A stretch of DNA of 64,000 bases from positions 203,428-267,427 of the forward strand of contig NW_004797598.1 of the NCBI RefSeq assembly GCF_000002075.1, read 5' to 3'. The translations under genes and the position numbers were made by a program. Positions 4,243 through 5,857 of this stretch are shown here, piece after piece. Numbering within the stretch: position 1 is the first letter of the stretch; each line of letters begins with the position of its first letter. Source of the stretch: Aplysia californica. Lineage: Eukaryota. Below the pieces are notes generated by a model, which did not search any database, was not told where the DNA came from, and saw only the letters and a list, made by a program, of their open reading frames with translations.

Positions 4243-4670
4243 AAAGAGCCTAACCATTACAACCCAAACAGAGTGGTAAAACAAGACGACAAACAACAAG
4301 GTACAGAAGAGGTTCCAAAAATTGAAACTTGAGCTTTCATCAAGACCCCAGAAATTTTTAATCCCACTTGAATTTCAACCCAAAGGCTTTGAGTTTAAGG
4401 AAAGTTCCGTTAAAAATAACAACGCTGTAGCAGGCAGCCAAGGTGACACCCCCACCCTCCTCAGCCGGCACATGATAGAGCTGAAATTGCCGAGACACTT
4501 CAAATGGCAGTCCGTAAAGAAGTGAGTCCGCATGATATAGACTTGACGTTACCAGAAACAGACTTGACATTGCCAGAAACAGACTAACAATACTGACACT
4601 GAGAAGAGTTAACACAACTAGACCCGATCCCCGCCTTAATGTCCAACAATCACCTGCAAAGACAAAGTAA

Positions 4671-4850
4671 TTTTTAGTTTTAGTAAAGAGTTTTACGGCA
4701 CTTGCAACACAATAAGGTCATATAAGTGCCGAAGATTAGAGGTGTTACAAGAGAGGAACAAACACAAAATAGAAGGAGGAGAGATCAGGACGATAGACGT
4801 TTGATAGGAAAGAAGAAGCAAACCACACCAGAGCACCCGCCAACCACCCA
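4671..4850 (-). mobile_element. Family A short retroposon (GTGGGTGG...stem-loop...(AAAACT)n), full-length copy with 14-bp TSD
   Basis: TSD CAAAGACAAAGTAA at 4657-4670 and 4851-4864. Other minus copies not listed separately: about 1570-1660 (fragment), 3759-3925, 5104-5274, 15981-16146, 22369-22514, 29796-29981, 49065-49110 (fragment), 56575-56750. Confidence 0.9.
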
Positions 4851-5857
4851 CAAAGACAAAGTAAACGACAGACAGAATCAGAAGGGATAACATACACCAT
4901 CAATACAACCCTACTGCAGATGGGAAGGTAACAATGCCCAAAAACCAGTCTATATATTTTTTTTTTAAACAAAAAAACTTTCAACATTTTATGTACTAGT
5001 GCTTGTAACCTCCATATCACTGGCTTATCGAACATATATAACAATGTTAGGGAGAAGCAGCTATGGCATTGTGCCGCCTGCAATGATGCCTATTCTCCTT
5101 TACTTTTAGTAAAGAGTTTTACGGCACTTGCAGCACAATAAGGTCATAAAAGTGCCGAAGACGAGAGGTGTTACAAGAGAGCAACAAACACAAAAAAGAA
5201 GGAGAGATAAAAGACCATGGTTGTTTGATAGGAAAGAAGGAGCAAACCACACCACAGCACCCGCCAACCACCCACGTCTACTCTTCAACCAAACAAGTAA
5301 GTACATATATATAACAATCAAAAGCACTATTCCCGTGCTCAGTGAAATCGTCCAACCATGCAGACATACATGATCACGACGAGAACTAACCCTACGCTGA
5401 GCCATGCATTACCTCTGAAGAAAGAAGAGTCCAACAAACAAAGCCCAATGCACTTTCAAAGGCCACATGCAGAGGAATCAAACACCAACATCACAATAGC
5501 ACATCAATATGTCCACCCATCCACAGAAGAAGAAGAAGCACAGCTGCATTGTGATTACAATCTTAACCCTTTGCCCTCTTTCACAAACCAGCATCTAAAA
5601 TGTGTGACTCTCCCACAAGCCTGCTTCTAAAATGTGTGACTAACACACACACACACACATCAGAGTGACAAAGCTTTTCGCTTCAAGGTGCGACAGTTTT
5701 GGACAACAACAAGTCAACCACTTGGAAGTCAAGGCCAATAAACACAATGGCACATTCAAACACTCAAACGTGACGACCACTTCGACAAGTAACACACATC
5801 TTTGTGAACCAATACCCATGCACAAAAAGAAATAGGAATTAAATTATATTCATTTAA

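Follow-up and report, generated by a model that had tools for sequence, protein, structure and literature searches.

The window analysed here, the whole 64-kb stretch of Aplysia californica DNA, carries two host genes, read on opposite strands. TTC17 is provisionally placed on the minus strand, from one exon bounded by AG and GT (24796-24923) together with strand skew; searches of the long minus-strand ORFs against Pfam and a protein atlas gave no TTC17 match. NCAPH2 lies on the plus strand, with exons at 43991-44846 and 55508-57009 (PF06278, PF16858). The element that concerns us is a 181-nt insertion at 4671-4851 on the minus strand, whose first base, G1, is at 4851.

This focal copy is bracketed by a perfect 14-bp duplication (TSD), caaagacaaagtaa, of which one copy adjoins the tail (4657-4670) and the other the head (4851-4864), so placed that base 4851 can be counted either as TSD or as the element's own G1. 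Contigs from a public run (X9, flagged as probably DNA) were aligned to 2980-5980, and one of them, 740 nt long, matches 4409-4656 and then passes directly to 4851-5077. Its depth equals that of the unique flanks, and exactly 194 bases are absent from it, the element plus one TSD copy. Because X9 carries an exact empty site, the focal insertion is polymorphic, and the boundaries of the element are fixed independently of any alignment. The 14-bp duplication agrees with the length given for this copy in the preliminary description, which had been made from the sequence alone.

A blastn search of the window with the focal copy as query returned 31 hits, which reduce to approximately 25 independent insertions, some 16 of them complete or almost complete, once fragments are merged and two hits belonging to a partner LINE (described below) are dropped. 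The tally agrees with the earlier count of about 25 copies or fragments of a ~180-bp element. Together these insertions make up about 6% of the window, and the first 12 bases of the element occur 19 times in it, against 0.23 expected. On the minus strand, near the focal copy, are insertions at 3762-3927 and 5099-5275 (89% and 90% identity to the master, respectively) and a 5'-truncated copy at 1521-1660. Further along the same strand we find two more 5'-truncated copies (16001-16139 and 22369-22522), a single copy interrupted by an insertion of about 290 bp (19450-19922), copies of 85% (21688-21870), 89% (21912-22091), and 82% identity (29805-29981), and, adjoining a run of N, a tandem array built from the first ~76 nt of the element (28539-28733). 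Two minus-strand copies belong to a second subfamily, B: one at 24982-25161, and one at 24612-24791 whose insertion point lies 4 nt within the splice donor of the exon spanning 24796-24923(-). A degraded old copy on the plus strand (10710-10836) is antisense to TTC17. Other plus-strand copies are those at 47233-47395 (87%), 52477-52650 (80%, with 2 extra bases separating the TSD from G1), and 53607-53777 (78%), a fragment at 48948-49010, the 5' half of a copy at 51488-51561, a 5'-truncated subfamily-B copy at 53950-54099, and a subfamily-B copy at 62845-63025. Lying head to tail with one another, also on the plus strand, are a copy of 91% identity (63404-63575) and a subfamily-B copy that landed in its tail (63576-63760). 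Antisense to NCAPH2, on the minus strand, are a head fragment (49066-49108) and a full-length copy inside an intron (56573-56749).

The family extends throughout the genome. A search of the assembly (927,310,431 bases in 4332 contigs) gave 2286 first-look candidates; the 40 that were scored are all 97-100% identical to the focal copy, and 21 of the 40 are 100% identical to it over 177-180 bases. In the genomic sequence examined, identity to the focal copy spans 68-100%, a range from about 30% diverged to identical that marks the family as old and still active. Insertion anatomy was read from 33 copies that carry the head and tail motifs of the young master. Their TSDs are 8-16 bp long, with a mode of 12, and their 5' end is fixed at G-TGGGTGG, the leading G being the element's own in 20 copies, ambiguous in 12, and absent from one; the statement that most copies begin at one nucleotide is accordingly upheld. 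No exon-end or AG pattern precedes G1 in these 33 copies. Tails are (ACTAAA)n-like and differ in length between copies, 5'-truncated copies occur, and the target sites resemble a pyrimidine run followed by A-rich sequence. There are no TIRs in the element. These are the features of a short, non-autonomous, TSD-flanked retroposon with a LINE-type 3' end, and the retroposon hallmarks listed in the preliminary description (TSDs of variable length, occasional 5' truncation, no TIRs) all hold.

Consensus sequences of about 180 nt were built for subfamilies A and B, and the element divides into three parts, all given here on the minus strand of the focal copy. The head (positions 1-34; 4818-4851) is G/T-rich, the body (positions 35-118; 4734-4817) is CT-rich, and the LINE-derived tail (4680-4733) leads into a terminal repeat of the (ACTAAA)n type and of variable length (4671-4684). 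Over positions 1-56 the A and B consensus sequences do not differ. The first ~18 nt of the element are also found at the head of other short families whose bodies are different, and the CT-rich body is homologous to part of a TSD-flanked family of ~410 bp that has a different head (L031:1657-2070). Within the body, at positions ~82-87 (4765-4770), is a run of T, four long in subfamily A and six long in subfamily B. The tail, of ~55 nt (positions 119-172), consists of a 7-bp stem with a 20-nt loop (stem arms at 4724-4730 and 4697-4703), then GTAAAAC (4690-4696), and then the repeats.

Compensatory changes have preserved the stem. In a set of 49 distinct tails, the stem cells are paired in 87% of cases, a figure that falls to 25-50% if the 3' partner is shifted, and the two subfamilies differ by two compensatory stem pairs, A-U/G-C (24 vs 19) and U-A/C-G (22 vs 18). 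Compensatory changes of this sort, though few as events, are what a hairpin recognized by a protein would show. The predicted RNA fold of the whole element is no better than that of shuffled sequences (z = -0.2); the 3' stem-loop alone stands out.

An RT-family scan of the genome recovered 30 loci, of which five (L081, L085, L086, L087, and L090) form one group, 97-99% identical over 2.8-3.8 kb. The open frame in this group reaches 1226 codons (L090:37-3714) and encodes an apurinic-type endonuclease (Exo_endo_phos), a reverse transcriptase (RVT_1), and an RNase H domain (RNase_H). Such a combination in a single ORF is the architecture of the I superfamily, and the close identity of the copies marks the LINE family as young. 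Its alignment with the window at 17996-18341(-) takes in the last ~140 nt of the frame and the beginning of the 3' UTR. That window stretch is an old 5'-truncated copy of the LINE, which runs ~150 nt past the aligned part and ends in the element's stem-loop, GTAAAA, and tail. Since the 3' UTR of the LINE thus ends in the same stem-loop, GTAAAAC, and A-rich repeats, the tail of the element is the 3' end of the LINE itself. On the plus strand, 62746-62837 is a short, 5'-truncated piece from the 3' end of this LINE, a further 5'-truncated end of its UTR was found elsewhere in the genome (L058:134-266), and a short fragment of stem-loop and tail at 6340-6400 on the plus strand belongs either to the LINE or to another family.

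The tail is not confined to the LINE and the element. A SINE of ~520 bp with clear A and B boxes (L088:541-1063) bears an identical LINE-type stem-loop, and the tail is common to the element, this tRNA-headed SINE, and at least one further short family. The autonomous LINE with a shared 3' stem-loop that the preliminary description had asked for as a check therefore exists, in the form of the L090-type elements and the old window copy, and its proposal of target-primed reverse transcription with a partner LINE now draws on TSDs, 5' truncation, a shared 3' end, and the LINE itself. Two of its other statements stand in part. It had counted two tRNA-headed SINE families in the window; a SINE of this kind is present, as a single fragment (54472-54704), and it is the only one seen. 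It had also offered, as its simpler alternative, a bipartite LINE derivative; the last ~55 nt are indeed LINE-derived, whereas the body is a module shared among SINEs.

ARAGORN found no tRNA in the element, Rfam gave nothing relevant either for the whole window at the gathering threshold or for 4600-5350 at a loose threshold, and nowhere in the 64-kb window does the B-box pattern occur, in accord with the earlier observation that there is no Pol III B-box or tRNA head. The tRNA, 5S, or 7SL head with an internal Pol III promoter that marks a SINE is thus lacking from this family. We also built a descriptor for an HDV-like nested double pseudoknot, in which P1 starts from G1 with a G-U closing pair, P3/L3 falls just before the 3' strand of P1, P2 has at least 5 bp, and a C is present in J4/2. 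It gave 0 solutions in the subfamily A and B consensus sequences, despite the presence of G+1; the sense strand has no purine-rich partners for most of the helices.

A source for the head was sought among LINEs as well. The 30 RT loci reach no further upstream than 45 nt before the ATG, and a word-based protein search for the partner LINE yielded a single close relative, on a 3.6-kb contig. No head match was found in the related LINE contigs L091-L094, or in two distant LINE relatives for which ORF1 and 5' regions are present, and metagenome contigs contain no exact match to a 22-mer of the head. Occurrences of the head alone, considered as candidate LINE 5' ends, were rejected in the sequence examined, being deletion variants of the element or members of other short families.

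Raw reads of three stranded polyA RNA-seq runs from the same species were placed on the window. Depth over the element is ~900 and zero in the unique intron flanks, so the reads come from other copies of the family. Reads in both directions fall on the element (534 vs 410 in the central bin), and neighboring repeats have reads in one direction only, which shows that the library is stranded and hence that both strands of the element are transcribed. Ninety percent of the placed reads run on, over 20 nt or more, into sequence that does not resemble the window. Loose read ends pile up at the element boundaries with low agreement (0.4-0.5 at 4851), as expected of many different flanks. No start or end sites of molecules were called in this polyA RNA, from which a 180-nt RNA would be lost, so that a discrete transcript is neither proven nor excluded, and none of the 15 best supported of the 494 joints is an RNA splice joint at position 1 (4851). 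The picture from polyA RNA is thus of a family carried, on either strand, as a passenger within longer transcripts. Some reads end in long runs of A immediately after the sequence ...CTCTTTAC, an indication that some transcript may be polyadenylated at the tail region.

Copies in the window are strongly biased in orientation. Counting independent insertions, 19 are sense and 3 antisense to their host genes (two-sided binomial p ~9e-4), with 13 sense and 1 antisense on the TTC17 side and 6 sense and 2 antisense inside NCAPH2; three more plus-strand copies lie beyond the last NCAPH2 exon placed. Elsewhere in the genome, neighboring copies no more than 1.5 kb apart are co-oriented in 32 cases and opposed in 7, and the flanks are T-rich in the orientation of the element at 34 of 50 loci (22 of 29 for copies that are 99-100% identical). 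Read on its antisense strand, the element presents (TTTTAG)n, purine-rich sequence, and then AG|GT, which gives it an exon-like look. The sense bias may reflect either a bias of insertion or rapid loss of antisense copies, and the target-site pattern of a pyrimidine run followed by A-rich sequence does not obviously explain it.

We consider the element to be probably (with a probability of roughly 0.6) a tripartite, SINE-like, non-autonomous non-LTR retroposon that is copied in trans by the resident, active I-superfamily LINE. The reverse transcriptase of the LINE would recognize the stem-loop, as in "stringent" LINE/SINE pairs, and would prime within the repeats on the nicked target. The fixed G-TGGGTGG would then mark the 5' end of the template RNA, most simply a start of transcription by a polymerase other than Pol III. 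That start may be supplied by the head, a portable module of 34 nt that would work as an initiator or as an internal promoter, in the way proposed for the LP-SINEs of mollusks, or alternatively by a few master loci with promoters outside the element, and the resemblance of the first six bases to a splice donor would be a coincidence. Three points sit less comfortably with this reading: a G/T-rich head of 34 nt in which no core-promoter motif can be recognized gives an internal promoter little to build on; polyA RNA shows no accumulation of starts at G1, an observation that weighs little either way; and the strong bias toward the sense orientation is something it does not predict.

The preliminary description had proposed a different origin for the 5' end, in which the RNA is freed from host pre-mRNA by the spliceosome, with the GT at positions 1-2 serving as the 5' splice site, the ACTAA repeats of the tail act as branch sites, and insertions next to an AG make ready-made introns. 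The element does start with GTGGGT, the same hexamer at 48767 would pass as a donor from its sequence, the GT of the copy at 24612-24791 completes a GTGAGT at the exon it adjoins, and copies are mostly sense to host genes. Most of this model's support is nevertheless lost, and we now regard it as very improbable. The repeats and hairpin, read there as branch-point-like, are the tail of a LINE and occur on a tRNA-headed SINE too; the pyrimidine-rich body is a module common to short families (L031:1657-2070). Tail and body are shared retroposon modules and therefore not intron mimicry. The identity of subfamilies A and B over 56 positions far exceeds what a donor needs, and the bases before G1 show no trace of an exon end. 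In the polyA RNA, reads cross position 1 unspliced into many flanks, and none of the 15 best-supported joints (of 494) falls there. Of the four supports for a 5' end cut by the spliceosome three are gone, and only the GT at positions 1-2 still looks splice-like. The window has no intron made up of the element, as had already been stated. A related and similarly improbable, if slightly less remote, view keeps the family promoterless and has its templates carved from the host transcripts of sense copies, the G1 end being made by spliceosomal 5' cleavage, a recursive-splice-like event, or an unrecognized ribozyme; the sense bias would then mean that host transcription is connected with the sites at which copies persist or with the way they do so.

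A passenger origin that dispenses with the spliceosome is the more serious competitor, although we judge it unlikely. Here the element lacks a promoter, its sense copies are carried within host pre-mRNAs or other long transcripts, and a non-spliceosomal activity, such as an unrecognized self-cleaving motif or a cellular nuclease, cuts at G1. Almost all the element RNA seen is embedded in longer transcripts, with heterogeneous loose ends at 4851; no promoter motif can be recognized; copies within genes are sense-biased; and LINE 5' ends trimmed by ribozymes are established for R2, RTE, and L1Tc. Such trimming finds little footing in this sequence, however: the HDV-like descriptor fails in both consensus sequences, the sense strand is short of purine-rich partners, the whole-element fold is unremarkable, and no Rfam ribozyme family is present. 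Moreover, a sense bias of the source copies alone would not bias where the daughters land. An ordinary Pol III SINE, whose head derives from a small RNA now too diverged or too short to recognize, would fit the fact that most SINEs are of such a kind, and the head bears what we take, by eye, to be a weak and gapped resemblance to the G-rich sequence with which 7SL-type RNAs begin and to the final bases of 5S rRNA. Yet no A or B box, tRNA call, or Rfam match emerges even at a loose threshold, and the internal T4-T6 run should stop Pol III before it reaches the stem-loop needed for copying, which argues against Pol III; we give this origin as little credence as the spliceosomal one.

The retroposon copied in trans that we favor has relatives among known systems. 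LP-SINEs, described from gastropods and bivalves, are short TSD-flanked retroposons without tRNA heads that have body and tail in common with tRNA SINEs; in the head they are homologous to the initial ~70 nt of LINE 5' UTRs, the LINEs being of the Nimb/I clade and, in one case, of the RTE clade (reference LINEs are of the Nimb-17_LMi, I-3_DR, and RTE-9_CPB type), and Pol II transcription has been suspected for them (Matetovici et al. 2016, PMC4758252). The element resembles them in its TSDs, tandem-repeat end, absence of a tRNA head, link to an I-superfamily LINE, and modules shared with other short families, including tRNA SINEs (tail with L088:541-1063, body with L031:1657-2070). It differs in that LP-SINE heads are ~70 nt long and defined by homology to LINE 5' UTRs, whereas its own head has only ~34 nt. 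The element is best filed as LP-SINE-like, on a likeness in tail, body, TSDs, and LINE superfamily. Such a family was not reported for Aplysia in that survey (PMC4758252), and beyond it and PMC5786205 our literature search found no named Aplysia SINE families.

Other comparisons are more partial. The trypanosomatid ingi/L1Tc elements and the short RIME, NARTc, and SIDER share a 77-nt 5' module, Pr77 (PMC4758252), and as in our case non-autonomous elements exist alongside I-superfamily LINEs; there a short 5' module fixes the 5' end of the RNA, as the head may do here. Pr77, however, is a demonstrated promoter and HDV-like ribozyme, whereas no such fold fits the head of the element. SINEU families (Kojima 2015, cited in PMC4758252) likewise have heads that are not tRNA, 5S, or 7SL, but these are recognizable U1 and U2 snRNAs, whereas the head described here matches no Rfam family. 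The earlier, spliceosomal idea recalls introners in positing a mobile element with splice signals and a TSD that completes an intron; it departs from them in that no copy in the window is an intron and the supposed signals are modules of a LINE tail. Known introners are mostly DNA transposons whose copies are themselves introns. In stringent pairs such as UnaL2 and UnaSINE1, the part that is conserved is the stem. That pair, cited in PMC4758252, is alike in that the SINE carries the 3' stem-loop of the LINE followed by short repeats, and in our family, too, the shared 3' stem-loop has been kept by compensatory change. UnaSINE1 differs in having a tRNA head and a partner of the L2 clade, whereas here the partner is an RNase H-bearing LINE of the I superfamily, the head is not from a small RNA, and mobilization by that partner is putative.

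Taken as it stands, the combination of open LINE frames, a covarying shared stem-loop, a polymorphic insertion, and a head outside the Pol III mold points to a currently active LINE/short-element system in a laboratory mollusk; to our knowledge, such systems are rare outside vertebrates. It offers a setting in which two questions can be tested, namely how a head of other than small-RNA origin comes to define an exact 5' end, and whether "LP" SINEs of the Pol II type truly exist. The sense bias, if it proves to be genome-wide, would bear on the way in which retroposons and splicing constrain one another.

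Within the window, copies of the focal family, a group of LINE-dependent short retroposons of about 181 nt, show a strong bias toward the sense orientation relative to host genes (about 19:3). Elsewhere in the genome, at loci L001-L060, neighbouring copies of the family are co-oriented in a ratio of 32:7, and the flanks of copies, read in the orientation of the element, are T-rich.

One copy, belonging to subfamily B, lies within a splice donor. The copy and its adjoining exon occupy positions 24612-24923 on the minus strand of the window; the 5' splice site of the exon (24796-24923) is interrupted at 4 nt by the insertion, and the GTGAGT donor is completed by the first GT of the inserted copy. 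For the old donor of this exon, the downstream copy of the TSD at present reads GC.

The head of the element is also found in tandem, in an array at 28539-28733 on the minus strand, adjoining a run of Ns (28364-28538), that comprises approximately 2.5 units, each corresponding to the first ~76 nt of the focal element. This array is a minisatellite that arose from the retroposon head. In the focal copy, the head (4818-4851, minus strand) contains four short G tracts (GGG, GG, GG, and GGG) separated by loops of 1-2 nt; judged from sequence, these tracts could allow an RNA G-quadruplex of two layers to fold at the extreme 5' end of the element.

In each of the three stranded polyA RNA-seq runs, a 40-nt stretch of the body (positions 4771-4810) is internally duplicated in tandem in 100-270 reads. 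Nearly all of these reads run in one direction, and they point to a well-expressed transcript carrying a duplication-variant copy as their source; locus L029 provides a genomic example of this variant. At the start of the tail (4686-4689), hundreds of reads terminate in long A or T runs, as do reads on the opposite strand at position 4769, inside the body, in one of the RNA-seq runs. Such ends may arise where copies are polyadenylated internally, or may come from copies that contain long runs of A/T. Two other interspersed repeats, at 4085-4300 and 5800-5990, are strongly expressed in the polyA RNA, in a strand-specific manner.

A copy of the focal family has itself served as the host site for a MITE-like element of ~430 bp with terminal inverted repeats of ~32 bp (L068:2698-3133). 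A second LINE family (L077, L080, L082-L084, and L089) has the same 1226-aa architecture as the partner LINE, with ~67% DNA identity between the two, and differs from it in the 3' UTR (54 nt compared). The partner-LINE tail of the focal element is shared by a tRNA-headed SINE of ~520 bp (L088:541-1063). This SINE has A and B boxes, its CT-rich body is long and its central domain conserved, and many of its copies share 95-97% identity. The focal element has its CT-rich body module as well as its LINE tail in common with a TSD-flanked short family of ~410 bp (L031:1657-2070, with further loci at L074, L066, L016, L003, and L041), whose ~170-nt head is unlike that of the focal element.
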